64,000 bases of DNA from Paraphysomonas bandaiensis (Eukaryota > Protista > Chrysophyceae): assembly GCA_965644295.1 (NCBI GenBank), contig CBFFRP010000400.1:62001-126000 (forward strand). Reading direction: 5' to 3'. Positions 3,388 through 64,000 of this stretch are shown piece after piece. Made by a program: the position numbers and the translations under genes. Position 1 is the first letter of the stretch, and the number at the start of each line of letters is the position of its first letter. A model generated the notes under the pieces. It ran no database searches. It saw only the letters and a program-made list of their open reading frames with translations, and was not told the origin of the DNA.

Positions 3388-4711
3388 AGCTCGCCCGTGA
3401 GATATTGTCTCAATGTGTATGGTTATGTGGGAAATGTAGTATTGTCGAGCAGTCGGAGATATTGTTCTTGTGAGATCATATAATGCTAACCATTTATTTT
3501 CATTTTGGTAACGCAGTTTAGTCTGAGCATTCTGAAGAACCCAATATATTACGTAGTATAGCTGTGTTGCCAGATTGTGTATAGTATATAGTCAGGACTA
3601 GGGAACAATTGTCAATTGTCCTCCAACATTCAGGTTCTGCTCAAGTGGTTGAATACGTACTCTATATTAGATTAAAATGTAGTTTTTATTAGCTAATAAA
3701 GAAGCCAAACTCTGCAGCGCACTCAAGATGGGAAGTTTTCATAAATACAAGCTAAAAACGATAAAACTTCATCTTATGTATGTCGTATGTGTACCTATCA
3801 TATATGTGTGTATATGTATGTATGTATGTATAGGTACCTGTACAGGACTGGTTATGTCATCAAAACATAATCCATAGATTAGATTCTCATCCACTGGAGC
3901 CAGGAATAGAGCCACTGTGAAGTTCGCTAGTTTACGTGTGAGTAATTAATGTGCGGTTAGTTAAGTAGCACAACATAATAGTCGAAATTATTATATTACA
4001 ATAGGACATTACATTAAAGTTAATCTTGCACTGCATGTAATCCTTCAACTTGCGTTGTTGCAGACAACATAATTTTGACTTTCACACTTAAATTTAAACA
4101 CTTTAAATCATATTCATGCAATATCCGTTCTTAATCACATCTGTCTACCATATGTTCACTAGTCGATATTATATCCATTAATTACGTACATACATTATTT
4201 GTAATAGCAGTCACGCAGTCACGCGGTCACCCTTTACTACTACGTAAATTTTGACCTATTGCACACTACTAACTCACTTCAATAGCACAATATAAACCAT
4301 GTATTTAGCAGAGCCCAAGCGCTTAAATAATATATCAATACTTGGAACCACTTTTTTATGTACACTCTGAACATATATACTCTACAAAAAATTAAATAAA
4401 ATCTGTCATATAGTCCTGAAGTAAATAATAATAATTTCCGAACCACTGTGTTGGTCATATTTTTTGACTTCTCTAGTTAATTTTTCAATGCTGATTTTCT
4501 GATAAGGATGTCCGCTTCATTCATGTATCTCTATTGTTTCATGAAAAGAAAAACAATTGCCCCAAAACTAGGAACGTAAATATAAAGTGGAATGGCGACT
4601 TTCAGAAAAATACATGCTGAAATATATTATTCACATCAATACGCGTTATGTACAAAAGTCGTCCTATAGATAAGAAAAAGATATATCATATCACAATAAA
4701 GTGCACAATGA

Positions 4712-7700
4712 TTACTTCTTTCTGTTCTTCTTTTCTTGCCAAGTTCGCAACAATTCGTCTTCTGCGTTTCTCAGATCTTTTATAGCCTTTCTCAATCCAT
4801 AAGTAACCTAGATAGACGTATACACATGAAACAGACACACAATTGTAAGTATGGACACAGGTAAAGCCTTTACGTAACATAAAATACATACATACCACAA
4901 ATACATATCATAAAATTGTTACCACAATAAGCTATGTTGAACTACTCACCTCGTGGTACTTGTCATATACACCACCCAGTGATAATTTCCTCTCAACCCA
5001 CGATGCATCTCTATTATTACTACGAAAGAAATCCGCTTTCCATTCCGATATTTTCATTTTCAATTCTCGCTTTTCCTTCATGAGCGCATGTATTTCTTCT
5101 CTCAGAGGAGTAAAGAATCCCACAAGGGCATCTAGTTCTGTCTGCGGAATAGTCTCGCGAAACTGTTGCGACGCCTTGTTAACTTTCTCGTCGTCAGAGT
5201 CGTCACCTTGCAACATGCCTGATGGATTCACACTGCTCCGACGACGAGAAGATCGTCTGAGAGAACTGCTACGACGACTACTAGTTCCCGTTCGCGGTGA
5301 TGCAGTACTTGGTGCACCACTAAGAGTGCGGGTAGACAATGGTTGAGAAGGTGGAACATCACTTGGAAAAGCGTCATCATCTTCCTTACCAGAGTCCTCA
5401 CCTTTTTCTTCATCTTTCACTTCCGTTACCTTGTCTTCATCTTTCACTTCCGTGTCCTTGCCTTCATCTCTCAAGTCCGTTTCCTTGTCTTCAGCTATAT
5501 TTTCTTCAATCGGATCAACGTTAATCTCGTCGTCAATATCATCACTTTCAATTCCACGAAGCTCATTCCATTCTTTACTGTATCGTTCCCGTATCTCACG
5601 GAGCAAGGCCTCTTCGTCGATTTCTTCCGCTTCATATACTGTTTCGTCTGTCCGATTGGTCAATTCTTCTTGTACAGGAGTAGTGGCACGTTGTATAGGC
5701 TCAGCTTGCACTACAATAGTGAATATAATGTCGGCCAACAATTGACGAATAACGTCATCGGAGTCTTCTTCTATTGGTGTCGACACATCTGTTCTATCTC
5801 CCTGGCTACTATTTTCATCATCGTTTCTGGGATGTTCACCATGGAGTTGCCTATCTTTTAGGATTTTCTCTCGCTTTCGTCGATTATCCGCTTCTTCCCA
5901 TCTTTTTCTTCGTCTGTCAGATTCAGCCCTTTCATCTTCCAACATCTGTGCCATATTATCCCCAAGTTGCCTGATCTTTCTCCTCGCCCGACGGCCCCTA
6001 ATATGGCACGAAATTATGAATAGTCAAGCATACTATAGCAGCAGAAGATTCATACATAACAGGGTCTGTTAATAAAACCACCAGTAAAATATACACGATA
6101 AATACCGAAATAGTCTCTGTATATTAGTTACAGCTAGGATCTGATCTTCTCTGATGGATTTTAAGGGTGACGAGAACCATTTATTTCTAGGTAGCACAGA
6201 AAGGCGCTCACGAATCTCCTCGAAAATGAGCTAAAACACGACATTCATTTAGCAAGAACACCAAATGCTAATAAAAATCGTATTACGAATAAAGAATGAT
6301 ACTCAATCTCATTATCATAAAATACAGTACCTTGCTCCTGAGAAAGCGCCCTTCTTTAGATAAGCACGATATGAGCTCATCTTCGCTTCTCGCATGGAGT
6401 AATTTATCTCTGAGTAACTATACACATGCCGCAATGATTGACTGGTTGTGATACAAAGATTCATGTCTACACTTCGTATACTCATGCTTCTCAAAGACGA
6501 GGGTTACATACCTTTAAAAGGGCGCAACATAACACTGGCATTATGTTCTCCCAGTCGCGCGGCTTACCACCCCACATCACTAACTGATCCCATATGAAAA
6601 AAATCGCAAACTCTGGTACATACCCGACAAAACCTGACAAATTGAGGGGCTTAGTACAATTTATTTGCGTTGTTACACTGAGCGCCTACACATGTTCAGC
6701 CAATAGAATATATATAACTCTCTTTTCCTGTAACTCTTACCGGTCTCCAACCAATCTCGAAGTAGCCTGTAGCATCCTGGAGGTTGAATAACGTGAATGA
6801 ATTGCCCCCCAGCTTTCTTTGACCTGGGTGATTGATTCTCATGTTGAATTACATCCGGACGCCGCGGGCTCCTGCTAGTAGCACTTGTGCGATGAGTTTT
6901 AATTCCGACAGAGCCCTCGTCACGAGATTCCAAATATTTCTGCATTACGATACAACCAATAATCAATACAATTTAACACGTGTATAGATTCCCCTATGAC
7001 GTACTTTGAAACATTGCGTCACAAAAAGAACATAACAACATCAATATGCGAGTATAGATTACTGCTTAATATGCCGCACCTGCAAATGGTAATAAAGTTC
7101 AGGGTCCTCTTTTGACAGCAACACAAATGCCGCCGCAGCCACAGAGGAAATGTTGTATTTGTGATGAAGTTGTTCTGATGGAAGGCACGCAGTATATATT
7201 CTCATCAAAAACTTCAATGTCTTTTCTGAGACTGGTGTTGACGCTGGAAAGCACATCAAAAGAAGTAGAGCAATGGAAGCTATTCGGTCGTTGATATCAC
7301 CTAATCCACAGAAAATATTAATAATATTAATATGTAAACGCATTATACTATAGCGACAAATAGAGGCTATAGCGACAAATGCAGCGACAGTATGTGTAAT
7401 GTTGTAGCACCAGAGTACAGTATAATTATCACCGGTCAAAATGTAGGCCGCTCGAACCAATAATTCTGCCCTCCTGCATATCGCCATTTCATTCATGAGT
7501 TCAAAATGAGAAGGAAAAGGTCGAAAGTTATTTTTCCCACATTGTCGCGGTGGTAATTCGACAGTTGGAACCTTATGAGTTCGAGGCAACGCGTTCGTCT
7601 GAAGTATATTCGTTGGAGGAGGAGGAGGCTCAAACCCGCTTAATTCATCGTCAGGATTCGATTTAAACTGCTGCTCGTATAAATTATACGCAGCTTTGCA

Positions 7701-13239: not shown

Positions 13240-15705
13240 TCAAAAACATGGACATGGAGTGTCTTGTGAACGAAGCCACTGCAGCACATCCAAGTGCCCT
13301 CCCTTTGCAGCTGCCCTGCAACCCTGCAAGTGCCTTCACCCCAGGGACATGGAGGGTCCTGTGAACGAAGCTACTGCAGTACATCCAAGTGTCCACCCTC
13401 AGCAGCCTCCTTGCAAGTCTGTTCACTCCATGGACATGGAGGGTGCTGAGAACGAAGCCACTTCAGTACATCCCAGTGCCCTCCGTTTGCTGCACAAAGG
13501 CAAGTCCATTCATTCCATGGACATGGAGGGTCCTGTGAACGAAGCCACTGCAGCACATCCAAGTGCCCTCCCTTTGCAGCTGCCCTGCAAGTATGTTCAT
13601 TCCAGGGACATGGAGGGTCCTGTGAACGAAGCCACTGCAGTACATCCAAGTGTCCACCCTCAGCAGCCTCCTTGCAAGTCTGTTCATTCCATGGACATGG
13701 AGGGTGCTGAGAACGAAGCCACTTCAGTACATCCAAGTGCCCTCCGTTTGCTGCACAACGGCAAGTCCATTCATTCCATGGACATGGAGGGTCCTGTGAA
13801 CGAAGCCACTGCAGCACATCCAAGTGCCCTCCATTTGCAGCAACATTGCAAGTACGTTCATCCCATGGATCTGGAGGGCTCTTTGAACGAAGCCACTGTA
13901 GAACATCCAAATGTCCACCTGCAGCAGCAGCAGTACAAGTGGTTCCAAGCACTGAATCTGGAGGGTCATGTGAACGAAGCCACTGTAGAACATCCAAGTG
14001 TCCACCCCTAGCAGCAACACTACAAGTCAACAGATTCCATGGACATGGAGGGTCCTGAGAACGAAGCCACTGCAGTACATCCAAGTGCCCACCCCTAGAA
14101 GCATCGATGCAAGTCGCTTCATTCCATGGACATGGAGGGTGCTGAGAACGAAGCCATCTCAGAACATCCAAGCGCCCAAATCTAGCAGAAATTGAGCAAG
14201 TCGTTTCATTCCAGGGACATGGAGGGTCCTGTGAACGAAGCCACTGCAGCATATCCAAGTGCCCTCCATTTGCAGCTGCCCTGCAAGTCTGTTCATTCCA
14301 GGGACATGAAGGGTCCTGTGAACGAAGCCACTGCAGTACATCCAAGTGTCCACCCTCAGCAGCCTCCATGCAAGTCTGTTCATTCCATGGACATGGAGGG
14401 TCCTGTGAACGAAGCCATCTCAGAACATCCAAGCGCCCAAATCTAGCAGCAATTGTGCAAGTCATTTCATTCCAGGGACATGGAGGGTCCTGTGAACGAA
14501 GCCACTGCAGCACATCCAAGTGCCATCCCTTTGCAGCTGCCCTGCAAGTCTGTTCATTCCAGGGACATGGAGGGTCCTGTGAACGAAGCCACTGCAGTAC
14601 ATCCAAGTGTCCACCCTCAGCAGCCTCCTTGCAAGTCTGTTCATTCCATGGACATGGAGGGTGCTGAGAACGAAGCCACTTCAGTACATCCAAGTGCCCT
14701 CCGTTTGCTGCACAACGGCAAGTCCATTCATTCCATGGACATGGAGGGTCCTGTGAACGAAGCCACTGCAGCACATCCAAGTGCCCTCCATTTGCAGCAA
14801 CATTGCAAGTACGTTCATCCCATGGATCTGGAGGGCTCTTTGAACGAAGCCACTGTAGAACATCCAAATGTCCACCTGCAGCAGCAGCAGTACAAGTGGT
14901 TCCAAGCACTGAATCTGGAGGGTCATGTGAACGAAGCCACTGTAGAACATCCAAGTGTCCACCCCTAGCAGCAACACTACAAGTCAACAGATTCCATGGA
15001 CATGGAGGGTCCTGAGAACGAAGCCACTGCAGTACATCCAAGTGCCCACCCCTAGAAGCATCGATGCAAGTCGCTTCATTCCATGGACATGGAGGGTGCT
15101 GAGAACGAAGCCATCTCAGAACATCCAAGCGCCCAAATCTAGCAGAAATTGAGCAAGTCGTTTCATTCCAGGGACATGGAGGGTCCTGTGAACGAAGCCA
15201 CTGCAGCATATCCAAGTGCCCTCCATTTGCAGCTGCCCTGCAAGTCTGTTCATTCCAGGGACATGAAGGGTCCTGTGAACGAAGCCACTGCAGTACATCC
15301 AAGTGTCCACCCTCAGCAGCCTCCATGCAAGTCTGTTCATTCCATGGACATGGAGGGTCCTGTGAACGAAGCCATCTCAGAACATCCAAGCGCCCAAATC
15401 TAGCAGCAATTGTGCAAGTCATTTCATTCCAGGGACATGGAGGGTCCTGTGAACGAAGCCACTGCAGCACATCCAAGTGCCATCCCTTTGCAGCTGCCCT
15501 GCAAGTCTGTTCATTCCAGGGACATGGAGGGTCCTGTGAACGAAGCCACTGCAGTACATCCAAGTGTCCACCCTCAGCAGCCTCCATGCAAGTCTGTTCA
15601 TTCCATGGACATGGAGGGTGCTGAGAACGAAGCCACTTCAGTACATCCAAGTGCCCTCCGTTTGCTGCACAACGGCAAGTCCATTCATTCCATGGACATG
15701 GAGGT
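13240..15705. repeat. 87-bp coding tandem repeat with 957-bp (11-unit) higher-order duplication
   Basis: Identical alternative-frame ORFs recur at a 957-bp offset (13724/14681, 13846/14803, 14159/15116); 957 = 11 x 87. Confidence 0.97.
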
Positions 15706-16013
15706 TCCTGCGCATGAAAGCTCATGAGATGTATCATCTGCTGTAGTCTGCCGTATTGTGCACATGTATTCATTAGTTTGATGTGTGGGCAGCCCATAGC
15801 CAGAGCCCATGAGACCATTGAGTTGGTCATACAGTAGTGAGATGCATGTGACTCAAGTCTCTCTCTGCTCTTATCAGTGTATACTATATCGTGAAATCTC
15901 TTACAAGTTAATATCACTGGAAGGAGAGCCGTGTGTGGGATCAGAGAGATGATGACACGAAGAACATCAACATTAAGAACATATATATGCGACATATCTA
16001 AACACTGATTCAT
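13371..16013 (-). CDS. Intronless F-box-like + ankyrin-like (WLR...CPW) repeat protein, 880 aa, about 27 repeats of 29 aa, degenerate 3' end
   Basis: N-terminal F-box-like VLNVDVLRVIISLIPHTALLPVILTCKRFHDIV; repeat consensus WNExTCxxAAxGGHLDVLQWLRSQDPPCP; the stop is TAG at a TGG position and eroded repeats continue to about 13240. Confidence 0.88.
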   Translation of the reverse strand: MNQCLDMSHIYVLNVDVLRVIISLIPHTALLPVILTCKRFHDIVYTDKSRERLESHASHYCMTNSMVSWALAMGCPHIKLMNTCAQYGRLQQMIHLMSFHAQEPPCPWNEWTCRCAANGGHLDVLKWLRSQHPPCPWNEQTCMEAAEGGHLDVLQWLRSQDPPCPWNEQTCRAAAKGWHLDVLQWLRSQDPPCPWNEMTCTIAARFGRLDVLRWLRSQDPPCPWNEQTCMEAAEGGHLDVLQWLRSQDPSCPWNEQTCRAAANGGHLDMLQWLRSQDPPCPWNETTCSISARFGRLDVLRWLRSQHPPCPWNEATCIDASRGGHLDVLQWLRSQDPPCPWNLLTCSVAARGGHLDVLQWLRSHDPPDSVLGTTCTAAAAGGHLDVLQWLRSKSPPDPWDERTCNVAANGGHLDVLQWLRSQDPPCPWNEWTCRCAANGGHLDVLKWLRSQHPPCPWNEQTCKEAAEGGHLDVLQWLRSQDPPCPWNEQTCRAAAKGWHLDVLQWLRSQDPPCPWNEMTCTIAARFGRLDVLRWLRSQDPPCPWNEQTCMEAAEGGHLDVLQWLRSQDPSCPWNEQTCRAAANGGHLDMLQWLRSQDPPCPWNETTCSISARFGRLDVLRWLRSQHPPCPWNEATCIDASRGGHLDVLQWLRSQDPPCPWNLLTCSVAARGGHLDVLQWLRSHDPPDSVLGTTCTAAAAGGHLDVLQWLRSKSPPDPWDERTCNVAANGGHLDVLQWLRSQDPPCPWNEWTCRCAANGGHLDVLKWLRSQHPPCPWNEQTCKEAAEGGHLDVLQWLRSQDPPCPWNEHTCRAAAKGGHLDVLQWLRSQDPPCPWNEWTCLCAANGGHWDVLKWLRSQHPPCPWSEQTCKEAAEGGHLDVLQ

Positions 16014-16196
16014 GGTTTATATGAGGCTGATAGAGTGTTAATATACAGCAGATGAGTTTATCATATATGCGTGCAGAGTACCACTATACATATCTACAGC
16101 GATGTGCATGCACAGCTATATACCGCAGTATACGTATACCATATCCACTTTTACCAGGAGACCAGAAAAGAAATTTCCTCAACGTGAACACCATGA

Positions 16197-46945: not shown

Positions 46946-47703
46946 TGATGAGATGAAGATTATAAATAAAGGAATGAAGAGTTGTATTGAGTATATATAT
47001 GATGTGATTGGTGTCTATATATATATATGCAATCCATAGTATGGTATATCTATACACACATACATACACACATATATAGAGAGCAGTACATGGAGTGACA
47101 GGCTAGTTGTGTGGTGCAGGAACATACTGCATATTTTAGTACACAAGGGTAGTTGAAATTTCATGGATTTTATGAAAAATTAGGAGAATATAGTCGAAGG
47201 ATTTAATATCCTGATTTAATATAAAATTATGAGTACTTTGTTATTATAGTGTTAGAAATCATGGTTTTTACGTCAGAATTCGAAAATTGGCATCTCTGTA
47301 TCATCTTGTATCTGTTGTTGTATCATATATGCACAGCGTATGGGCATCTTATTTTTCGGAAATAAATTGAAGCAAAATTCCTCTATATTACTAATATACA
47401 ACTAAGGCTAGAATACAGATAATTATTGTCTCAATAATAGAAGCATCTTTGAACAAAAATATACGAAGCGATACTATTGTGAGACACCAACTTCTGTATT
47501 GCTGCTGTATGTATATACACACATATCTCTACCTAGATCTCCATAGTACTTATAAGGTCCATATATATATACATCAACTCATAAGTTACTCATATAGCTA
47601 ACCCTTAACTATAATACTTATGTAGAGATATCTCACTAATGAATATTCTCTATATAACAATTCATTATTATTATCCATCATTATAAAGAGTGTATATATA
47701 AAC

Positions 47704-50700
47704 ATGTCATCTAAATCACAGTTTTGTTGGATTCCAGATGAAGATAATGTATATCGTATTGCTGAAATTATATCTGGTTATGGTACAGATGAATATAAGA
47801 TCAGAGTTGTAGATGGTACAACGGCTGCAACTGCTAAGCGCCCATCTGCTCCAGTTTCTGTTAAGGCATCAAAGACCTTTCCAATAGATTCTATGGAAGA
47901 ACTATCAGATCCGCCATCAGATTTGATTCGACTTACTGATGTCCATCGCCCTGGTATATTACATACATTACGAACCCGATTCGATAGAGATATAATATAC
48001 ACTAGTATTGGTCCGATATTAATCGCTCTAAACCCTTTTCGATGGATCCCCGGCTTGTATGACGATGACGTCAAAATGAAGTATCACAAAGAGGCTCTCA
48101 ATCTGTCTGATAATCCTCATGTCTTCGCAGTGGCTCATGACTCTCTTATGGGCTTACAGTTTGGTAAGAATCAAAGTCTAGTCATTAGTGGCGAATCAGG
48201 TGCAGGAAAGACAGAAGCAACTAAGCAGTGCTTAAATTATCTCGCCGCAGTTGCCGGATCAAGTTCAGGTGTACATGATAGAATTTTGCTTGCCAATCCT
48301 ATACTTGAAAGTTGGGGTAACGCCAAAACGCTCAGAAATAATAACTCTTCTCGATTCGGTAAATTCATTGAGATATTGATTGCGAGGAGTGGTGAGATTG
48401 TTGGATCATCTAACACCACATATTTACTGGAAAAATCACGTGTTGTGTTTCAAGAGAAGGGGGAAAGAAGCTATCATATTTTTTATCAATTCTTGTTTGG
48501 AGGTCCGACTGATCTTATTGAAGAGTTTGGTCTGGTGCGAATGAGGGATCATCCAGAAGAAGTCAGTTATATCAATCAGAGTGGGTGTCTCCGAATCGAT
48601 GGCATAGATGATAAGGCCGAATTCGACGAGGTAGAAAAAGCACAAAATGTAATTGGGTTTGGAGAAGAATATAAAACTCTGCTAAGAATTGTGGCTGGTA
48701 TTTTACATCTTGGTAATATTCACTTCGGTGAAAATCCGAATGACTCGGAAGAGTCGGTAATAGTTAATCAGTCCGAGAACCACCTCGAGAAGGCTATACA
48801 CCTTTTTGGGGTAGACAAATCTACGTTTCCGCGCTCATTACTATTTAAGACAGTGCGCTCAGGGAGTAAGCGCAAGTCTGTCAGCTTTAGTCCGTATTCT
48901 CCATTGGCAGCATCGGAGAACCGCAATGCCCTCGCGAAAGCGATTTATAGTCGATGTTTCGATTTTATCGTAGAAAGGATAAACTCATCGATCAACGCAG
49001 ATCCAGAGAGTCTGGCGTCTATACAGACTAGCATGATCGGCGTGCTTGATATATTTGGTTTTGAAATATTTCAGAAGGTAAGACGACTTTTTTAATGTAC
49101 TTATTGTATGATGGTGATGACAGAATTCCTTCGAACAATTATGCATCAATCTCGCGAATGAAGCCCTTCAGCGGCACTTCAACATCCACATATTTCAAAC
49201 TGAGATGGAGATTTATATGTCTGAAGACATTGTCATTCCAAATCTTACATACAATGATAACCAAGATGTTTTGGATTTGTTGATTAAGAAGCCCAAGGGT
49301 CTCATACCTATGCTCGATGAGGAAGGGCAAGTTCCTCGAGGGTCTTGGGAAGGATTTTTGAACAAGTTCACAAAGCATCACTCCGGCACAAGCAAAAGAT
49401 TAAAATTTCGGCCTGGGTCGAAGGTATTCTCGCTTATACATTACGCTGGAGAGGTTGTATATGAACCATCCCAATTTATTTCGAAGAATAAGGACACCCT
49501 CTCTGCTGATCTTGTGGAGGCTATGGCAACATCATCTGTTCCACTTTTAGCAAACATATTCAGCGAACTTGTTGATTATTCCAATTCTGTTGGTCGTTCG
49601 TCTACGCTATCATCCAAACAAACAGTTGGAACAAAGTTTAGAGTTCAATTAGATTCTTTAATGACAACTCTAAATGCTACAGAACCACGTTATATTCGCT
49701 GCATCAAGCCAAACGCGCTGAAGAAAGGAGGGATATTTGAGGCAGCGCTGACGAATGAACAGCTTACTTATAGTGGTGTTTTTGAGGCGGTGATAATCAT
49801 GCAAAATGGATACCCTTTTCGGTTAAGTCATCGCGAATTTCGAAACCGTTATCATATGCTTGTCCGTCATCCAGAACAACGCCAAAGAATATTTGGGTCA
49901 GAAACAGATACTTGTGGACGACTGGAGCTCCAAGCACTCGGCGATATTTTGTCTGAGCAAAGCAACTCACTGAAGGAGTGTCATGTTGGAAGGACAATGG
50001 TATTTTACCGTGTGGAGCAACATCGTGAGCTAGAATCATTACGTAAATGTGTTGTTGACTCTGCTTTGCGTATACTACAGAGAAACTTACGAGGTTATGT
50101 TGCGAGGAATTTGTATGTTCGTGTGCGTGACGCAATCCACATATGCACAAGGGCTATTTTTAAAAGGAACGTTGTACTTATGAATTCTTCAGTCTCGACA
50201 CTGCAGGAAATGCGTGAACGTGTATTGACTGTGTATTCTATTGATTTGGGTGTACAGGAATGTTGTAGTGTTGCGAATGGGTATGCGGAAGCCATAGAGT
50301 CTGAGAAAGTACTTGTTCAGACGATATCAGCGTATATGGATGACGAAGCCGACATATTTCAAGTGTTCGATGCTCTAAGTGAGGCTGTTGCAGAAGCGAA
50401 GTCTCTCCACTTTCATGCGACACTAAATGGAGTTAATATTTCTGTTGAATGGGATAAAAATCCGCTGTTTGTTAATGCTGATAAAAAGGTGGAAAAGTAT
50501 AGGAAAATAATTGATATCAAAACGAATTTAGATAGAGGAGTTTTGGAGAATGATGAGATTACACTTAACCACTGGTTGCAGAAATTGGAGGAATGTAGAG
50601 TGAGTGGGGAAGTAGACCCAAGGTTTTGTAAGGAGGAAGAAAGTATGGCTAAGGCTACGGTGAAAACTGCCCAAGAAATCTATTCTGCGTTTTTAGCGTC

Positions 50701-53700
50701 AGTTAATAATGCTATTTTGACTGGCAGACTTACTTATAAAATTCCGCCGCCCTCTAGCGACGTTTCAAGTTTTGAAGATATGATAAAAATAAAGGCAGAT
50801 GTTGACCCTTCTGATATTAAAAAGTTTCTTTCAGATTTCGATAAAATGGAAAGCCAAAATAATGCTCGACTTGAAAAGGATCGTAGCAGTGCACGATCAT
50901 CCATGCAAATGGCTCGTCTCTTGCAAGTGTGTAGGGAGCTCTGTACTTTAAGAGAAGCAGCATTTGTAAGTGACTGGGAAACTGTATGGAAATCACTGTC
51001 CATTTGGAAGAATTATCTGCAAACCTTTTCGATAAATCTACATGGAGGCGCGGAAAACGACGTTGACGAGCTGCAAGTACTACCTGTTGTTGTCGAAGTT
51101 GAATCAGCCTTGCGTGATGAAATTCGTGCCTTTTTTATTTGTGCGATTGCGAAAGTAAAATTCGAGAGCTTGGCTGTTGAATTACGAAGAGATTGTATTC
51201 CCCCTATACCACAACTGGAAATGCCCAGTGTGGATCTGTCTGAATTGAGCACATTGGTAGAATTCGTAAGTACTACAGATTGTGTCAACTTGATGTGTGC
51301 TCAGCTATGCCACGCTCTCGAGTTTGCTGCGTCCAAGGTGCGCCTGAGGAAGGCTATTGTTTCAATTGACAAGGGGTGCTTATGCAGTATTTTGGAAAGT
51401 AGTGAAACGCCGCTGCCACCATCTGATGAGGACATGTTGAAAGGTAGGGTGTGGCTGGCGTTTTATAATTGTGTCGACGATATTCGACATGTCCTTCGAA
51501 ATGATGGACCAAAGGGACCACCGGGACATTTAGATATGCTCGGTGTGTCTATTGGTGCGCTACAGCGGACACTACAGATGTGCATTTCTATAAAAGTCGA
51601 GCCCCAGGAAAAATGGGACGGTATTATTTCTGCAGTAGAAGCACTGTGTCGAGTTCGTGCATCATTGTGTGATGGTGACAATGTTAAGTCATCCTCCTTA
51701 ATATCACACATGATGAATTCATCTAGCGAAAGTCGTATCTTTTCAATATCGTATGATGGTGCTGATGGTAGTGAGTCTGACCTATTTATGGAAGTGCTTG
51801 GATTAGTTAAAAATGAAATCATGTTGTGCAAGCGGGAACTTGATCATTTGAAAGCTGTGCAAGATCTAGTTGACGCAATTTCGCAAGGTTCTGTACACGG
51901 CGAGGTCGGGGCACTTGATATACAATCAGTTCAAGCTGATTCACTGCGAGAAGCTGTTTCATCGTGCCGAAATTCTTTAATATATTCCGATGAGATCGTT
52001 CAACTGGTGCAGGATTGTGAATTGTTAATAACACTTAGGTCGTGTGTCATGTCGTCTGAATGGGATTATCTGCTTCGGTTAGCTGGTGATTTGTATGAAA
52101 CCAGTAACGGTTTTTCTAGTACTCACGAATATGTAAAGTCTGAGTTTGAAGTAATATTTGGCGAAGCACAAGATTTGCAGGCCAGAAAAAAAATGGAAAT
52201 TGCACTTGCTGAAAACGCGCTCTATGTAGGCGATGATGATGAGCTTCATATGATAGAATCTGTGAAGCCTTGGGAAAATTTGAGGAATTCTATTCTGTTT
52301 AGTAAGAGTCAGAAGAGTCTATCGTTCGAGGCTAAATTTTTGCTCGCTAATTCTATTTTGGTATTTGCACTGCGAGAATGTGTTCGGAAGTGCTTGTGGG
52401 AAGATGAATATTTACTACTTCAGGGCGTACGAACTTCAGATATAGCATTCAAACTGACTGAGAATTGCAAGATTTGGAGCGATGAAGAGGTTAAGGGTGT
52501 TATTGTTAAATTAATGGCAACCCAACGACGACAATATTTGGATAACATCGAAAGCATCTTTGGTTTTGATAACCAGTCTTATGATGAGATAAGATCTGAT
52601 ATTGATGTTAATGTAAATTTATTGTTAGCACATGCTCAAGCTATCGAAATTCACGACTGTGCGTACGATGAAATAGCTCTTATTCGTAGAGTTGCAATAG
52701 AACGTCGATGTCGTGCAGTCATCGTTCTTGCGGCATCAGTTGATCGCATAGAAGGAACAGTGGAGTGTGTGGATAATTCCCGTGTTGGTATTGACATTTT
52801 GCTTCAGTGTTTGGCGTATGTGAAACTCTATTCTTCTCAGACTTCCGAATTATTGCGATTATGGTCAGATGCTGCTATGGATATTTTAAATTTTCGCATT
52901 ATTGTTGGTGATAAAGCTACACAAGAAGTAAATGTTGATTTGAGCAGCTATATCACAACGGAAGACCTTTTGCGGTGTGAGAATATTGTACGTCTAGCTG
53001 ACGAATCTGACGAGTTTGATAAAAATTTGCGTGGATTTCCAGTTAGCGAACTAAAACTTGTTGTTGAGCATGTGTATGATTGCTTAAGTATCGAAGCGCT
53101 AGCCGATTCGTTACATCTCGGAAGGCCGCAGTTTTACAATGGAAAATTTGACACACAACATGTCGAATATAATCATGTCATAAATGCACTCGAGGTTGCA
53201 AAGAAATGTCGAAATAGGTCGGATCGTTTAGACCGATTGATGTTTTATGCAGAGTTGTGTGTAATGCTTCGTAAGGCCATTATAAGCCACAAATGGGATT
53301 TAAGCGAGAGTGGTCAGCGCACGCACCCAGTGGATAATGGACGTGGTGTCGGAGTAAAACAATGTTTGTTTGAGTATGAGCAATCACTCAAGTTTTTTCA
53401 ACGTAAAATGGAGGGCATTCCACCTGCCACTGTTACGGATGAATTTATTTTGACCCAAAGAGAGTGGGAGAGACGCCTTATTTTGCAAGGATACCCAGCA
53501 GCTTTGCAGGCAGGAAAAATTGGCGGAACGAACGGAAATCTTCTGCTCCATGAAGTTAAATATCAGCGACTTGCTGATCAAATAGATCTAACTCGATCTT
53601 GGTTTGAGCAGACTCAGGTAAAGGACCCTGACCTTGATTTACTTGTGAAGGCAGGACAAGAAATCGTGAATGTTCGAAAACGTTGTCTTGAAGTTCATGC

Positions 53701-56700
53701 TAAGTATAAGCGCGAGGTTGTGTTTCGGAAACCCACTAATTCTATTCGTGAGATTGTGTTATCGGATTTCATTTCAGAAGCAATATTTACTGCACTGGAA
53801 AAAGTGGAAGGACTGCTTGTCTACCCTTATCCGATGACAACTGAGTGGAAATTAGTTGATCAAGCTGTTTCGAAAATGGAGATATCGGGCCGTTTGGAGG
53901 CAACTCGCATGCAAGTTGAACTCCTTGGGACAGAAACTTTCGAACGGAATTTTAACGGGAATTGTATTAGAATATTTCACAATTTAAACGACTCTAAGTA
54001 CTCCCCACCTCATGACGATGATGTCAAGCACATTCTAAGTGAGTTGAGAGCCTCATGTCAGTCTTTCCGAGCCAGAGCATCAGAATTAAGTTTACATGCG
54101 TCCATAAAGCCCAGCGAAACATCTGAGTTTTTGTATATTTCCTGTGTTGTGTTAATACACTTGCTTGCTGCGGAGTCTGCAGGCAAGTACGAGCATTTTC
54201 AGCGCTCATGGTTGAGTAGTGGACCTGATAATCAGGCTGATACCACACCAAGCATTTCGAAGTTGTGCTCAAATATTGTGACGAAAACTTATAATGTACA
54301 GAGCGTGTTGCGAGCGGTGGCTGAAATGCCTAAAATTCACCCATGCGTCATGAATCAGATTTTGCGGGTTACCAAACATGTGGAAGATGAAATCACTTCT
54401 TTAGAATTATCTCAAGCTTTGTCGGAGGGAGCTGTTACTGGTTGTGTTGGGCATGTTCGTCATGATCGAATATCGTCTGTTGCTTTAGCGAGTGCTCTTG
54501 ATAGAGCGATTATGTTCGCCGTTACTGACGAACACTCTGAGAGAGATCGCTGTGCATCTCCAGCGACTGGTGGTGTGGTATCGAGAAAGTCTTCGGTATG
54601 GAAATGCAGGAATACGGAGGCCTTTGGCAGAAGAGGAAGTGTTCGTTACAGCGCATTCAGAAAATCTGCGCGCTTTCGTTACAGTTCTCGATACACATCG
54701 AACCAAATTGCGTATATCGAAATGAAGGCTGGTCTTAAAGAAGCTGTAGCCACTGGGGATGTAGGTGGTGTTGTATACAACGATATTTCTGATAATATTT
54801 TAAAATCTGCGTTGACTATATCTGAAGTGCAGTCAGCCCATCGTCCGGATGTAGTTCATCTTCGTCATACCTGTGAAATCGTATGCGAGCTCAGAGATGC
54901 GCTGGCCATGAAGAACTATCAGAAAGCTTTTGATATAATTAATGATAATATCGGACAGGAGGGGCAAACATTTAAAGAGCTTCTTAGGACGATATATGCT
55001 GCTGATTTTGCAATACATCCACTTGCGGTGGAAGAGTTTTCTCTTATTGCTCTGGAGACATGTGAAAGCTATTGGAGGTTTGCTGCAAAGAGAGCTTTAA
55101 TTAGAGGCTGTGTTACAGGATCACGTTGTTGCTTTCAAATGTCTGAAGTTAACTGCGAATCTATCGACGAGGTGTTGAATATGATTGAAGGGCTCGTTGA
55201 TGTCAGCCGTGCGTCAATTATTGTCAGGGAAGTGTGTTTTATGATAAAACATATGCGAAAGAGTGTCATAAATGCAATTGTATCTCATGAATTGGAAGAC
55301 GAGTTTTATCAAAAGAGGAAGGAGAAGATTCCTGATATTGCGTCGAATAAATTGGCAGCCTTATTGAAGCTCGGTTTTGTAGATGATGCGATCAATAATG
55401 CTCTCTTGGTTGTGAGAGCCCTGTCTCCTTTGTCTTACAGAGATATTATAAAAACCAATTATGCTAAGTTCGTAACGATTGAGAATATAGTTGACCATGC
55501 TAGAGAAAGCGTTAGAGTGATTCATGACGATGATTTGGTCGACACCCATCGTAAAATATTACTTGATGAATGCGACTTGATATCTTCGTTTTGTCGATTC
55601 TACTCTGTGATGCTTGCATTAGAGCGGCTTATGAATACGGAAGCTGTGTGGTTTTCTTATTCCTCTAGCCGATTAGAAATGGATAAAAACATAAAAGGCT
55701 TGCTATCGAAGGCCGTTCAAGATGCAGTGGAGTTAAGATTGGATGCTGATATTCCTGCAGAGCGTATCTGGTTTAACATCTTGGCTGTCGCTCAGTCTCT
55801 TTGGCATGTAGTCGAAGTCTGCCAAACAGATAAAGACCAATCGTCAGAATATTGCGTAGGTACTGAGTACTTTTCTTCTATGGTTGTTCCACAAATGGTT
55901 GTATTTTGTGAAACGGTATCGTCAGTAGAGGAGACAGACTTCTTTTTACCAGCTGCGGTTGTAGCCCAGCGTGCTCATATTAGTAATGCCTTACGAGACC
56001 ACTCGAACTACTGCTATTTGAAGGAATTAGTCAGCGATTCTTCATTTTTTGCTGTACGACTATCAGGCGATGATTCTGATCAAACTCATCGTTATATTGA
56101 ACCAATTTCTGTCTCGAGTTATTCCGCAGATCACCCGGATTTAACATATAAAAAGGTCCATGATATAGAAATGCACTCATTTGCTGGAAGCACGATTAAA
56201 TCTCTAACTGAGCTGCACCTGAAAATGCGAGCTTGTATAATGGAAGAGCAGTGGGCTGATGCAGAAGTATATGCCAACAGTATTCTTTTGGAGCAGTTTA
56301 TTGAAATTGAATTCGAGGAAGCAAACATGGTTTTACAATACTGTAGGACGCTAACGGCTCGAAAGCGAATCGAACAAGGTTTGGTAAACTGTGTTTTCCC
56401 GCCAGTGCCTGGGTGGTCTGATTTTTCCACTGCCTCTGCTCTTGCATTTGGCATAGTGGACCTTCCCCTACGTGCTGGTATGGATGCTGTAACTGGTGAA
56501 TTATCTTCTGTTGGTGGCAAGGCTACTATTGATTTCAGGCACCCTTCCTTAGCCGAGCTGATGGAATTGGGACGGTGTGTATTATCATTGGTTTGTGCTG
56601 TAAGAAGGCGTACTTGGGGAGCTGAATATATAGACGACGATACTTCCGGTGATGGACTACACGAATCTACTTTCCGAGAGGATATGTTTACGAAGTTATT

Positions 56701-59700
56701 TCCGATGGATTCTTCATCTGCCCCTGTTATTGCCACAGAGCGTTTGCATGAAGCATACAGAGAAGCTTTCAGATTTGAAGAACGTGACATTACCGTCAGA
56801 TCAGCTTTACAACATCTACAAACCGCATTACGCCAATGTGTGTTTCTGTCAGAATCTGTCAGAGCGTATTTAGATTTTATGGTACACTCTGCGAGTGTTG
56901 AGCAACGAATATTCGAGTTATACAAAATTGTAAGAGACGCTTTATGTCAACAAAAGGTTTTGGGAATTCCAGGTTATCTTAAGTGTTCCCAAGATGCCTA
57001 TGATGCTGTTTCTTCTGCTGTGAAGCGGTTGGAAAACGAAAAACCAATACTGAGTCAGAGTATTGGTCTTAAGCGGGCATTTCAGTCTTTAAAGTTATGC
57101 AGAGCTGCGCGTTCAGCTGTGTTGAAACAAGACTGGTACGCACTGGGCCCAATCATGCATCTGTATCACTTCATGGTTAGGGTTGATATAGCTGAGGGTG
57201 ACAATCAATGTGCTGAATTAATGCATTTGCCTATCCTATCTGACTCAGATTTACTAAGACAAAGTAGTAAAAGCTTCGACAATTCTGTTTATTCTTCAAT
57301 AAAAACTTTTTCTGAGTACTCTGTTCAAGCAACTCAACATTCTTCGGACAAGAAGTTTACCAGTGACAAGAAATTGGAGGAGTATTCTCAATGTTTGTTG
57401 GATGTGTCGGATACGCGTGAGCTCTTGCAACCACTGACAGATATTGATAACGAATTGCGTGTCCTGGAAAAGCACTTCTATTTTGAAAAAGCTTGTCACC
57501 TTTTTGCAGTTGCTTTGGAACGAACTCCTGCTCAAGGTGACCCGGGAGAATTGCGCAAAGACAGTATAGAATACAATCGCTTCTACCAGGTTAATGAGCT
57601 GTTGCGTGATAGTGGTCTGCTCCAGTATGAATCTGGTCAGCGATTACTTCAGGCAAGCTCTGCAATGATTAACTTACGTGTCAGTCAACGGAGCGGCCGA
57701 ATTGAGGACATAAAGGTAGCACTTCAGAAATGTAAAGAAGTTATGGACGAAGAAAAGCAGACAGTACTCCAACAAACTGCTTCTGCCGGAGTATCCCAGT
57801 CGGTAAGTCGGAAGTACATAAGTGAGGCTGCGGGTGAGATAGATACCGCATCTTCGGATTTCGTGCAGTTAGAAATTGTACAGCTGCTGTACAAAGCAAT
57901 CATATCTGATATGCTTCCAATGAGTAACGAATTAACTGCGGTTGTGGCCTTGACTCCGCAGACAGAAACACTTGAGGTCGAAGGCGCCGCGTCTACTGAT
58001 ATCACTACGGAATTGTCAAATGCCATTCGGGATAGTATAAAACGAGGGGTAACTTCGAATCGAGGACGCATACTTTTAAACACAGCTCGCCTAGTCATGA
58101 ATATTCGGAAGTATGTATTAAACAGAGACTGGGCTGACTTGCGTGCACTGTTTTCCGAATACGACATGGAAGATAAAGGTTCATATGATCGCATTGCAAT
58201 TGACGAAGTGGAATGTGCGAGACGGTTGATGTTGGTGTCATGTGCGGTTGAATTGGCGAAAGAGGCTGTTGACACTAATAGAATCAGAGGACTTATAGGT
58301 GAAATAGATATATCAGCTGTGAGTGTTGTTGCTCTTGAGAGAGCGTGCGAACAATTTGATGAGGTTAAGAGCGAATGGCGAACTAAGGCCATTCTTCCTT
58401 ATTATGTATCATGTACATCTCTGATGCCTATTCGAAACTATGCACTGAAGGAAGATTGGTCTGCAGTATATGACTGCGCCACTGTTGCTCTTGAGAAGTC
58501 AAAGGGGGTTTTCCAGCTTACTCCCAATGCTCAATTAGAGATTCAATTGGCGCATGATCACGCTGGATACGTGATCAGTCGTAGAGTTCTAGTTGATGCG
58601 CTCTCCAACGGTAGAATGGAAGGTGACGTAGGAGAAATAAATACGGCATGCATATCGTCGACGGTTGTTGAAGAAGCTATAAATATATGTCGCAATATTG
58701 GAATTGATCACCCAGATATTGAGCGCTTGGAAGCATATGCAAGGATTATTTATGATCTTAGATGTGCCCAGCAGATAGGTTGCTGGATGTCCGATCCAAG
58801 TAATGTGGAGGACACACCTGAAAGAGTGCTCCTTCCTGATACAGATACAATGGTCACGACCATGTCGTTGTATCCTATTTCTAGGTTCCCTAATACAACT
58901 ACACCTATGGGATTGTCCAACTGTACTACGACGCTTGAAAGGTATCTACAATATTCATGTCGTGGCTGTACCCCCACAAGCAATATCTCTATTTCGCACG
59001 AGTATGGTAGCATTGGCTGGTTAATTGATAATGCAACCGTTGACAGTGATGCTTGCCGTCTTGTTGGAGATGGTACAACCGCTAAAGTGCACTCCGTTCA
59101 AGATGTACTGGACGGTGCGGCTTATCTTGAAAGAGCACTTGGAATTGCAGAAGAAGCTTTTCCTGAAATAGCATTTGCCAGGGAAGAATTTAACTATCGC
59201 CATATCGTACACATGCTTCTCTCGTCAGTGTGCACCGCAGGGTTCAAAGGCATGCCAGGAAACTTAGATTCAAGTGAGCTAGATTTGTATCCACTTGAAC
59301 GTGCGATTGCATACGCTGAAGCTAATCCTGATGTTAGCAGTAGAGGGACATGTCGATGGATTCTGCGAGATGCAAGAATACTGTATGATGTGCGGAGGAG
59401 TCGGCACTCAAAGAATTGGAACGAACTCAACCATGCTATCAAGAAAGCTGCAGATGCACATACTCTAATACCCCCTCGTCCCGTTCAATTGAATGAATAC
59501 GGAGAAGAGTTTCTACCAGAGCCAATAATTCCATCTGTATGGAAAGAAATTTTGTTAGTGAGAGCTGATATGTTGTTTTACACTTGTTTATCTGAGTTTG
59601 CCCAAGAGATGACAAACAGATCCATAAAAGATACCAAGCGTCTGGGAAATGTCAGTACCAAAAAAGAAGAAACGGCTTTGTTGACTGAATTACTTCGAGT

Positions 59701-62700
59701 TATTTTGAAAACTCAAGCTGCTTCCAAGTTGTACCCGTCCACGGAATTTGACCGACTTCTGGAAGCTGAACATGCAGCACTGGAACTTAGAACACATATG
59801 ACGTTTGACTCTACTGTGTCTCCTCGTAAGATCATCATGAACGTTGTAGATATAAAAGAAAGAGATAAAAAGAACGGTGTCACATCGTATATTTCCTTGC
59901 TGATGCCGGACATATCACAACTTTCGGACGTTTTAGATACAGAACAATTGGTGGACGTGTTGGAGAAATCAATTATGAAGGATCAGGGTTACTTGCGTTG
60001 CCCTATCGGACACATTGATGTCAGTGAAATTGATTTGGAGTATATTCGCTTAGCAATTCAGTCAGCTATGCCACTACTTAATGTCACGGGTTCGAAAGAG
60101 CATTTGAGTTTGCTTAGTCTTGTGACAGCCATGTTGGCCATTCGCACCGAAGTGGTAGCAAAGAAATGGAATCGTGTCGTAGATCTGATCGATTCACACG
60201 AATCCCTTCTGAGTCTTCACCCTACGCTGGTATCAGAAGAGATATCTCGTTTAGTTGTGGAGGCGGAAAACGATGACGCATGCGAACATATGCGTCGTGC
60301 CTTGGAGCAAGGCCGTTTGACCAATGTTTTAGCACTTGTGAAAAGAATCAGTCGCCATCGCTCGGCGTCAATGACAGCTATTATGGAACCTAGTGTTAAA
60401 ATAGGTTTCAATGATTTCTCTGGCAGCTCACCCATGGGAGTGCTGCAACTTGGAAAATCGACGCCAGATGACGGAGATGAGCTGTTTGTTGCCGATATTG
60501 ATAGAGCAATTGAAAGAGCAATTGCGATACGACATAAGTCAGATGTAACTTCGGCGATGCTTCGTGCCTCAGTCTTAATTAGGGCACTTCGTTCAGCAAT
60601 AGCTTCAGGTGACTGGGATGAAGTTCAGCAAATAGTATCTGAGGAATCAAATTATACCCGTATGCCACACTCGTCTATTGAAGAGATACGAGCGGCAAAA
60701 GCCGCATTACATTATCGTAACTGTATGTCTAATTTATCGAAGGGTTTAGTCACTGGTGCAGCTTCTGGCGTTCCTGGAAAAGTTAATATTTCAGTTGTTG
60801 ATTGCACAGCTTTACAAACTGCCATTAGTCAAGCCGAAGTGTTGGATATATCCGACCCGGCTACAGCTATTATGCTTGAAATTTCTCATAGAGTGTGTGA
60901 CCTCCGACATGCTGTTGTGTCTTCACATTGGTTCGAAGTAAGGCCGTTCGAGTCGATATCAAGCAATAAAGGCAGTGCAAAGAAAACGTCACCCCAAGAT
61001 TGCACAGAATCTAAAACATATATTCAGATAGATACAGCTGTACCGTTTTCCAATGATAGTGATATGAGTTGTGGTATAGAAAGCTCTATGAGCGATCAAG
61101 TGAATCGAGGAATGGAGTCTACTGACGCTAGTATAATGCATGACAAAGGGAGATCTGTAGAGTCTTTGCTTGCGGATTTTAAAGAGCGAATTTTCATTAT
61201 CTCTGACTTAAAAGCTATCTTGAATATGCGGACCACTCCTACTGCCGAAAGTGCCGGTGTCATTTCTGAAAGTGCGGATCCATTTGATTATATAGATGAT
61301 GACGTTGACACTGCTGACCCTAACGACTTTGAGGGGGGGGCTTCAAGTGCCCCTGATTGGGTCGAGCATCAGTTGCGTGCGATAAAGTCTGTTGTACAGG
61401 AAGTGAAGTTGTTGGATAGTGATTTAAGAGAGCGGAAGAGACAAGAATTGATCGTATCGGCACTAGAATCTATTCCAGTGCCGGTTCAACAATTCGGTCG
61501 AGGACGTATTGGACAACAAGCAAACGGAGAATTACCTGACGATGTCTTGTCAGCAGATCAAAACCCCCCTGAGCGAGATATCTTTCTTATTAAGCCATTG
61601 GAATATGCGATTGATATGGCAACCAATATTGAAGGTGATATACCACCTGAAACTGTCAAACTTCTAAAATCTGCAGAGCTAATCCTGCGATTTCGAAAAG
61701 CGATGCATACGTTTGAGATTAGTAACTTCAAACAGCTTCTTGATGAAGCGGCTACATTGACAAGTCGGAATATGCTATCTTTACATTACGGAGTGTACGA
61801 ATTGGACGCTTATCAATCTGCGACCATGACAGTTTCTTTAGCGAAAGCAGAGCTGATTAATGCCTTGAAATTGGGAAGAGTCAAAGGTTCACTGGAAAGA
61901 ATTAATACAGCTGAAATTGAGGTAGATTCACTTGAATTTTGGGTATCATCTTGTTCAAGCTTGATGGAAACCACAAAGGAGCTCTCGATGGGTCTTTTGG
62001 ATTCACTTCATGAAGCACAAGTCATGCTGGAGTTGCGAACATGCGTTAAGAATGATCAGTGGAGTAAAGTTGGAGAGTTATTGGACAAGTATTCGGATCA
62101 GTTCTATAAGTTCGAATTCGGGCTGGACGAAGTTCGGCATATCCAATTCGCGTCGAAGTATCGAGTAATATCATCGTCGATATCTGAACTAGTAGCTGAC
62201 GTATTGCCTGCTGGCAAGGATGAACAGTCAACGTTTGTTATTCTAAAAACGGATGCTTTGGAGCGGACACTACAATCCGCGGAAGCCATTTCGTTATATC
62301 TTGATTCCCTAAGGCAGGCTGATACTGGTAGCTGTGAGTACGAAGAGGATTCATCCTTGAAGCAAAAAGGAGAGAATGCTGCTGTAAATAAAAGTAAGTT
62401 TACAGAGCTGTGTGATGGCGCGAAGTGTGTACTGGAGTTGTGGAAAGCTATAAGAAATAAAGCATGGTGCGACGATAAAGTAGCGGCAGGTCAAGTGCAC
62501 CATTTTCCGCGGCCTAAAGATCCGTTTTTGCATGTATTTTTCGAAAGTATTCGGCAGCATGAAGTCGCTCAAAGGCTCGGCGGAGTACATGATCAACTTC
62601 AAGTTTTGAAAATTAACCCGGAAAAGAAAATAAGAAATATCAGGCAATCGATAAGGGCGTCAATTGCACTTCATGGGTTAGGACATTCCTTCACTGATAT

Positions 62701-64000
62701 TATGCCCTCACCGACAAGTACAACTACCCCTACTCAGAAGAGGAGCAGGAGATCGAGTTTGTCAGTGGATGCCTCACCGTCGTCTCCTGGAATTAGCCCA
62801 TTTCAGAAAAGCTATTCACAAGGCTATGACACTTCCCCTATAGTGTCCACTGATTCTCTGAAACAGTCACCTGGTAATTCGCAACCGTTTTCGTCCCCGC
62901 AGTTTTCTCGCCGTCGCTCTATGGGGTCTTTTCTAGATACTTCACGTAAGAGCTCTACGGAAGAACCCGCGCAAAAAATATTGAATGTTGATGGACGAAT
63001 TATATCGGTAACGCACGCGCCTGTTGAGCACACACCTGGATTGGGTGTGGCGACTATTCTGTGTCAAACAGACTGGGCAACGCTTCCCCCTTTTGCTGTA
63101 AAGCAGTTTTCACAGGCCAGAAATATTTTAGTGGACAAAGTAACGAAGCTACGTTTGTCCTGGGGGTGCTCAGAAGGAGCTGCTGAAGAAGGGAAATATG
63201 GAAATATATCGCTAGCACACATTGACATTAAATTGCTGAATGTTTGCTTAGCTGATGTCCGTCGAATTAATTTTTACACTCACCAAATGATGGTTGATTT
63301 TAATTTTTCGAAGGATGTTCAAGCATATATCAAGGTGGCCAAAATTTTGTTGTCATTAAGAAAAGCAGTTATTGACAATAATGTTGATGGTCTAGTACAA
63401 GAGCTGAAAAATATGAATTATCTCGGATGTTCGCGTATGATAGACACGTCCTTAACTGAATTTCCTTGTGTCGAAAAAGAGTTGGATTTATTTGAAAGAT
63501 TTGCATTCGAATGTGTTGCAGAGAAAACAGTTAGAAATGCAGTTAACTTACTATCATCATTGGAGTATGTGAATTCGAGTATCACTCGGCATCAAAATTT
63601 ACTTGCACTCAAAAACCTTGACAAAGCGGTGAAACCGAAAGGCAAATCCACTCAGAATTATCAACATTGTGTGCGAGTTGGTAGCTTCCTTCATCAAGCC
63701 CTTACAGCATCAGTTATGTGCAATCATATTCGAGTTAAACGTTGTGAAGCAGATATTTTATCCTATTTGCATGAACCGGAAAGTCCTTTGGGTGATCTAG
63801 TTGTTACAGTTGGCAAAGTTTTGGTTATATTATTCAATAGTGCAGTAGTTAGAACTGAAACTCTTCAAGGTTCATCCCCTGGAATATCTGATGTTCATGA
63901 TTTTAGAGGTAATGATATCACATCTATAGTATCGGCGCGGCGTCGATCTGTTTTGGGCCAGCAAAAGAATGTTCCGTTAGCATCTACGTTTGGAGGATTT
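47704..64000 (+). CDS. Giant myosin heavy chain (at least 5,417 aa; 3' end outside the window); exon 1 47704-49077, exon 2 49124 to beyond 64000
   Basis: SH3-like N-terminus, GESGAGKT, NNNSSRFGK, DIFGFE|NSFEQLCINLANE, YIRCIKPN, GYPFR, VGRTMVFYR, one IQ-like motif LQRNLRGYVAR. The exon-2 frame is open at every point I read and no ORF ending in that frame appears in the track. Confidence 0.93.

Follow-up and report, generated by a model that had tools for sequence, protein, structure and literature searches.

Class IV myosins, known from Acanthamoeba, apusozoans, rhizarians and heterokonts, combine a WW domain, a motor and MyTH4, with or without SH3 (PMC3942036; PMC5583752), and the union of WW, head and MyTH4 is the signature of the class (Sebe-Pedros et al. 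2014, PMC3942036). Multiple tail domain changes have been described in class-4 myosins of haptophytes and stramenopiles (Kollmar and Muhlhausen 2017, PMC5583752), and dozens of stramenopile myosins are unclassified orphans (PMC5583752). In class XXIX stramenopile myosins the tail domains are very long (PMC2375034); the stramenopile classes in the classification literature, XXI, XXX and XXXI among them, have other tails. Here we analyse a myosin gene on the forward strand of a 64,000-nucleotide (nt) stretch of the Paraphysomonas bandaiensis genome (contig CBFFRP010000400.1, positions 62,001 to 126,000). This whole stretch is referred to as the window, and positions below are counted from its first letter. 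The gene codes for a heavy chain of 5,745 amino acids (aa), or ~645 kDa when the mass is summed over the products of both exons, and in its tail one ~100-aa unit recurs, strongly diverged, at least 20 times.

The size of this protein, hereafter the giant, is best seen against familiar motors. Myosin XV, at ~3,500 aa, is commonly named as one of the largest myosins studied in detail. Like the giant it is a large, long-tailed unconventional myosin, and relatives of the giant that carry MyTH4 end in this domain as myosin XV does; the giant itself is ~1.6 times longer, lacks MyTH4-FERM and SH3, and has a tail made of a different, unassigned repeat. Its 645-kDa heavy chain exceeds the dynein heavy chain in size. 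Like the class XXIX myosins it is a stramenopile myosin with a tail of unusual length (PMC2375034), but the Pfam scan of its exons showed none of the features described for that class. No myosin of this size or with this repeat tail is described in the classification papers searched (PMC3942036, PMC5583752, PMC2375034), and a search of the literature on giant myosins and on MyTH4, diatom or haptophyte tail repeats found no description of one.

An expressed myosin gene with one intron and a 15.9-kb exon

The gene model comprises the following features.

47625..47703, forward strand: 5′ untranslated region (UTR); transcript contigs start at 47625 and 47634.
47704..49077, forward strand: coding part of exon 1, 458 codons, comprising an N-terminal extension of ~70 aa followed by the first motor half (P-loop, switch I, switch II); from translation and a Myosin_head match (E 1.5e-118, profile positions 3-379).
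49078..49123, forward strand: the sole intron, 46 nt, GT..AG, immediately 3′ of switch II; from the sequence and from the exon joint in RNA runs X1, X2 and X3, absent in DNA run X5.
49124..64000, forward strand: giant exon 2, running beyond the window to a TAG at window-equivalent 64985-64987; from the open frame in the window and the downstream DNA.
49124..50011, forward strand: second motor half (relay, SH1 region, converter), exon-2 residues 1-296; Myosin_head E 1e-74, 252 bits, profile positions 380-679.
50075..50107, forward strand: single IQ motif LQRNLRGYVAR, exon-2 residues 318-328; pattern scan.

Relative to the transcript starts, the first in-frame ATG is the one at 47704. The original prediction, made from the letters of the window, held that the frame entered at 49124 stays open to the window end, and that the protein exceeds 5,400 aa with a tail of more than 4,600 aa. 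The 4,959 codons of exon 2 inside the window indeed contain no stop, and reading on into the next DNA we found the frame open up to a TAG 985 nt past the window (G000:C400:126985-126987). The completed exon has 5,287 codons (15,864 nt including the stop), and the tail of the completed protein amounts to ~4,950 aa. From the base composition of the window, the probability of meeting no stop over 5,287 codons is ~1e-151. The GC content at codon positions 1, 2 and 3 is 0.52, 0.38 and 0.36, as expected of coding sequence. Exon 2 had been missed by the open reading frame (ORF) track because ORFs running off the end of the sequence go unlisted there. The exon had also been contrasted with interrupted neighbouring genes; this contrast stands in relation to paralogous myosins, several loci of which are cut into exons of 100–600 nt in this genome, against 15.9 kb here.

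Transcription was followed by read mapping over 47600-53500 (5,901 nt). Three runs from three separate studies (X1, X2 and X3) behave as RNA. The predicted intron, which starts with GTAAGA and ends with AG, is precisely removed in a contig of 17,417 nt from run X1 and in one of 17,060 nt from run X2, and run X3 has an identical exon 1-exon 2 joint; in DNA run X5 the entire mapped stretch is found in one piece with the 46 nt present. In the three RNA runs, spliced contigs run unbroken through the head and into the tail for at least 4.4 kb. The X1 contig is exactly as long as a 79-nt 5′ UTR, a 17,238-nt coding sequence and a 100-nt 3′ UTR together, and this arithmetic, as distinct from direct observation, fits a transcript that runs with one intron to ~100 nt past the stop codon. 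Of the words sampled from the stretch, 8% were present in run X4, a seawater metatranscriptome, which hints at transcriptional activity of the organism or of a close relative in samples of seawater.

The motor is complete. The match of exon 1 to Myosin_head (PF00063) scores 397 bits over a cut-off of 33.3 bits, and since it ends at profile position 379 and that of exon 2 begins at 380, the match is continuous across the intron. As predicted, the catalytic motifs are intact: the P-loop reads GESGAGKT, switch I NNNSSRFGK and switch II DIFGFE, NSFEQLCIN follows the intron, and exon 2 resumes with NSFEQLCINLANE, the sequence expected after a myosin switch II, before completing the profile through relay and converter. 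A complete Myosin_head above the gathering score, joined with the catalytic motifs, makes the protein a member of the myosin superfamily, and judging by its sequence motifs it is likely to be an ATPase and an active actin motor. The neck has the one IQ motif that had been announced, the only match of the pattern scan within exon-2 residues 1–1,200. Compared with solved structures, the first motor half scores nearly equally against class XI, Dictyostelium class II, class I and class V (292–280 bits), and so shows no clear class affinity.

One further splicing event was seen in the neck.

50025..50080, forward strand: rare alternative intron, 56 nt, GT..AG, just ahead of the IQ motif; one X3 contig, depth 2, 30 nt on the shorter side.

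Its use would shift the frame and lead to a stop 16 codons later, leaving a motor of 774 aa with no tail; it is a weak candidate for a tail-less isoform.

The tail is an array of divergent copies of one unit

The amino-acid composition of the tail is ordinary and not that of low-complexity sequence. Plain self-BLAST of the tail found no repeats; they are detectable with profile methods only. When 240-column blocks of a seven-sequence family alignment were compared block against block with hhalign, off-diagonal matches reached a probability of 97.8% (E 8e-13). An exhaustive HMMER search with exon-2 residues 781-1980 against 1.84 billion cluster representatives (E <= 1e-3) matched 98 of them, and in many of these hits one protein aligned several times over, up to 14 times, with query residues 115-205. 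A hidden Markov model (HMM) iterated from this segment finds 21–22 copies in the giant and 8–22 in its relatives. An hhalign comparison of the family alignment with a 40-unit alignment (A3) placed 20 units at a probability of >=50%, 17 of them at >=90%. The array and its strongest units are located as follows.

51416..63394, forward strand: repeat array, exon-2 residues 765-4757; hhalign and iterated HMM.
51788..52078, forward strand: top-scoring unit, exon-2 residues 889-985; hhalign.
53021-53299, 58511-58789 and 60656-60934, forward strand: other strong units; hhalign.

The best units reach probabilities of 98.6–98.9% with E-values of 1e-15 to 2e-17, and weaker copies found by hmmsearch extend upstream as far as exon-2 residue ~394. 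As a consensus the unit reads E..L...ELDNR.....L..AL..G...G.VG.LD...VD...LD.AI..A..LGC.T.EA..LL..A.LVRRLR.AL..G.W..V...L. We conclude that the tail is composed of at least 20 very divergent copies of one ~100-aa unit (at least 20–22 statistically supported). The prediction of a giant tail is upheld in a refined form: the tail is not unique sequence but an array of units held in common with class-IV-like myosins.

The unit matched no established family. Its profile has no significant sequence relative in the PDB (best E 0.016), and a Pfam scan of the 40 units returned no recurring family. A degenerate MyTH4 was considered as its identity and rejected (hhalign probability 0.1%). A search of the genome found no paralogue of the whole tail; only the unit is shared, with one other myosin gene, on contig C144.

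A clade of colinear giants

Searching with the tail alone (exon-2 residues 320-4958, word-indexed search), we recovered six proteins of 4,933–5,634 aa, all with Myosin_head, which cover 79–100% of the tail at 29–51% identity. In the family alignment gaps are few and identity is 18–78% in each 150-aa window, with peaks at exon-2 residues 1351-2100, 3450-3900, 4200-4350 and 4650-4800. About a dozen of the 98 representatives matched by HMMER are likewise colinear giants, of 4,000–7,211 aa, and a myosin head was present in all eight giants tested. All homologues come from metagenome or run assemblies, Logan contigs included. One relative on a Logan contig has a matching layout, its head exon coding for 462 aa and the exon beyond a short gap for 4,933 aa, and another is similar. 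The switch-II intron appears to be present in P0006 and at locus L005. In P0003 and P0004 the frame stays open across the switch-II position as far back as the region of the P-loop, so that the intron is not common to the whole clade.

A maximum-likelihood tree (LG+G4, 1,000 ultrafast bootstraps) was built from 284 columns of the C-terminal motor half for 36 sequences: the window protein, 20 other myosin loci of the genome and 15 repeat-bearing relatives, leaving out loci with internal stops or partial coverage of this motor half. The colinear giants, window protein included, form one motor clade with an ultrafast bootstrap support (UFBoot) of 100. Myosins with the repeat and MyTH4, among them the C144 gene, adjoin this clade with weak support (48–66%).

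The distal end of the giants was examined separately.

63395..64000, forward strand, ending outside the window: start of a ~530-aa C-terminal region with no detectable repeats; profile searches.

The protein finishes with the basic motif SRRKRQF (window-equivalent 64940-64984; L002:1940-1984). A terminal A(V/L)SKR(K/R)RQF is kept in five of the six closest giants (P0001-P0004 and P0006), and the preceding ~300 aa are poorly conserved. The common SKR(K/R)RQF ending supports the stop codon that we found, and the motif itself may be a targeting or binding signal. No homologue of the last 661 aa was found among proteins of 363–1,157 aa, and the C-terminus has no relative in the PDB. A hidden MyTH4 in this region was ruled out: Pfam gave none up to E = 1, and the profile of the C-terminal family compared by hhalign gave a probability of 0.15%.

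The unit is shared with WW- and MyTH4-bearing myosins

Outside the giants, the unit forms regular arrays of 8–22 copies in myosins of the layout (WW)-head-repeats-MyTH4. N-terminal scans detected a myosin head in 13 of 15 repeat-bearing non-giant proteins, the two with none detected being P0028 and P0085. MyTH4 lies near the C-terminus in ten proteins (P0028, P0029, P0064, P0030, P0035, P0066, P0102, P0084, P0037 and P0032), of which P0066 (5,663 aa) and P0064 (5,036 aa) are themselves very long, and P0030 has a WW domain at the N-terminus in addition to head and MyTH4. The sole other gene with the unit in this genome, the myosin on contig C144 (~64554-76421, minus strand; loci L014 and L015), has at least nine regular units in ORFs of 265–901 aa, the last of which (602 aa) contains MyTH4. 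This gene looks like a class-IV-like paralogue.

The unit of the giant tail also occurs in WW/MyTH4 metagenomic myosins and in the C144 gene, and the motors of the two groups are adjacent in the tree, though with weak support. In contrast to class IV, the giant clade lacks WW and MyTH4, its units are far more divergent with unique stretches between them, and its motors form a clade of their own. Neither exon of the window protein contains WW (Pfam, E <= 0.01), and neither WW nor MyTH4 was found in this protein and its close relatives, MyTH4 being negative by profile-profile comparison as well.

Across the whole genome we counted 99 exon-level Myosin_head matches on ~35–40 myosin loci. Several of these heads are split into many small exons, for example that at C363:119829-122384.

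Predicted fold of the tail unit

Two AlphaFold2 models were computed with a 19-sequence alignment as input.

51464-55063, forward strand: model of 1,200 aa; predicted local distance difference test (pLDDT) 80.4, predicted template modelling score (pTM) 0.42.
51761-52759, forward strand: model of 333 aa; pLDDT 90.3, pTM 0.83.

The predicted unit consists of a long helix (28–36 residues), a beta-hairpin and three shorter helices, with short loops between units. The hairpin corresponds to the G..G.VG.LD motif of the consensus, and the conserved tryptophan lies on the last helix.

Structural searches returned no close match. Foldseek against the PDB gave a best E of 0.4 for the 333-aa model, and for the 1,200-aa model generic helical solenoids only (CAND1, TBCD, FANCD2, RyR; E ~4e-4, template modelling (TM) score ~0.1). 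Among 48,161 representative chains VIA-align reached a top Z of 6.9, none being above 8; spectrin and plakin repeats scored Z 5.3–5.8 over 150–212 residues, which is below the level that would mean more than a common helical arrangement. The ESM Atlas searched by features yielded nothing usable (scores 0.76–0.77). Searched by shape, it returned a single entry, a 190-aa haptophyte hypothetical protein that is probably a fragment of the same tail repeat.

Analogues of such an array are the rods of spectrins and plakins (plectin SR7-9, alpha- and beta-spectrin), which likewise consist of tens of tandem helical bundles of ~100 residues with a tryptophan-bearing helix. The predicted unit of the giant differs from theirs in being a beta-hairpin with four helices, joined to its neighbours by short loops rather than by a continuous helix, and has no sequence relation to them by Pfam or PDB matches. 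Neither a profile nor a clear structural match identified it as a spectrin repeat, that is, a three-helix bundle of ~106 aa.

A motor with a proposed long segmented rod

The data show one expressed unconventional-myosin gene that codes for a motor and one IQ motif joined to a tail of at least 20 units, and we propose that this tail serves as a segmented rod in a long-reach tether or transport motor, a reading that we consider likely as a whole. With its single IQ motif the protein would have a short lever arm, carrying one light chain. The units, which would have arisen by ancient duplication, could stack into a long segmented rod by analogy with those of spectrins and plakins; if each spans the length of its 28–36-residue helix (4–5 nm), 20–30 units would measure ~100–200 nm. 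Such a rod might keep an end that binds cargo or a structure well away from the head on actin. In relatives of the MyTH4 type this distal position is taken by a known cargo- or cytoskeleton-binding module, and in the giant clade this cargo end may have been replaced by the ~530-aa lineage-specific end with its KRKRQF-type basic motif.

Several points weigh against this proposal. The extended shape of the tail is hypothetical, and with its pTM of only 0.42 the 1,200-aa model would fit either a rod or a compact solenoid. No coiled coil was seen in the modelled 1,200 aa, and no search aimed at dimerisation elements was made. Neither a fold nor a partner is assigned to the gaps between units, which reach ~530 aa, or to the last ~530 aa. 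Reads were mapped up to 53500, and colinearity of the transcript beyond this point is a matter of contig-length arithmetic only; the giant product is known from DNA and transcripts alone.

Given that model score, the tail could instead be a compact alpha-solenoid scaffold, similar to huntingtin or CAND1, which assembles a large complex on the motor. The weak generic solenoid matches of the 1,200-aa model point the same way, but TM scores of ~0.1 are not meaningful, and the predicted units are small, closed bundles, each having a hairpin to itself and set off from the next by short loops. The number of units varies from 8 to 22 in relatives, a pattern seen more typically in modular rods than in fixed solenoids, and we find the scaffold improbable. 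An artefact of assembly fusion or read-through, or a decaying pseudogene, can hardly account for the locus. The sole hint in that direction is the rare alternative splice that cuts off the tail. Against it stand the 5,287 open codons with their chance of ~1e-151, coding-type GC by codon position, spliced contigs of three RNA runs in which the head is continuous with 4.4 kb or more of tail, and the fusion of head and tail in about a dozen distant relatives.

A rival that deserves more attention, though we think it unlikely, is that the protein is an ordinary member of a defined class and only its size is new, the tail being already catalogued, for example as that of a class-IV variant from stramenopiles or haptophytes or among the CyMoBase orphans. 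The unit is indeed common to WW-head-repeat-MyTH4 myosins, whose WW and MyTH4 mark class IV (PMC3942036), and the changed class-4 tails of haptophytes and stramenopiles, like the dozens of stramenopile orphans, offer places for it (PMC5583752). However, the giant and its close relatives lack both domains and form their own motor clade at 100% with a weak link to the MyTH4 group, the classification papers searched describe neither such a repeat tail nor this size, and the unit has no Pfam model.

Beyond the segmented-rod motor proposed above, we offer tentatively, and as no better than a possibility, a wider reading. The unit would be an undefined domain confined almost entirely to myosin tails, whose arrays form the longest motor-attached rod (>100 nm), a ‘motorised spectrin’, and the giant clade would be a new class derived from class-IV-like ancestors through loss of WW and MyTH4. 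If so, stramenopile-type protists would link actin mechanically to a distant structure. What is new in our data is a myosin whose tail domain is undefined, together with the clade of giants, distinct and conserved, to which it belongs; CyMoBase could hold relatives as orphans. Most of the mass of this heavy chain belongs to a domain with no Pfam model or solved relative that is found in dozens of protein clusters. Nearly every carrier of the unit tested is a myosin, and defining it would annotate a large, so far unassigned share of the myosin tails of protists, class-IV-like ones included. As a well-predicted repeat, it is also a new target for structure determination. The locus raises the question of what use a very long myosin is to a phagotrophic flagellate.

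Other open frames in the window

The second longest open frame in the window, of 881 codons, lies on the minus strand at 13373-16016.

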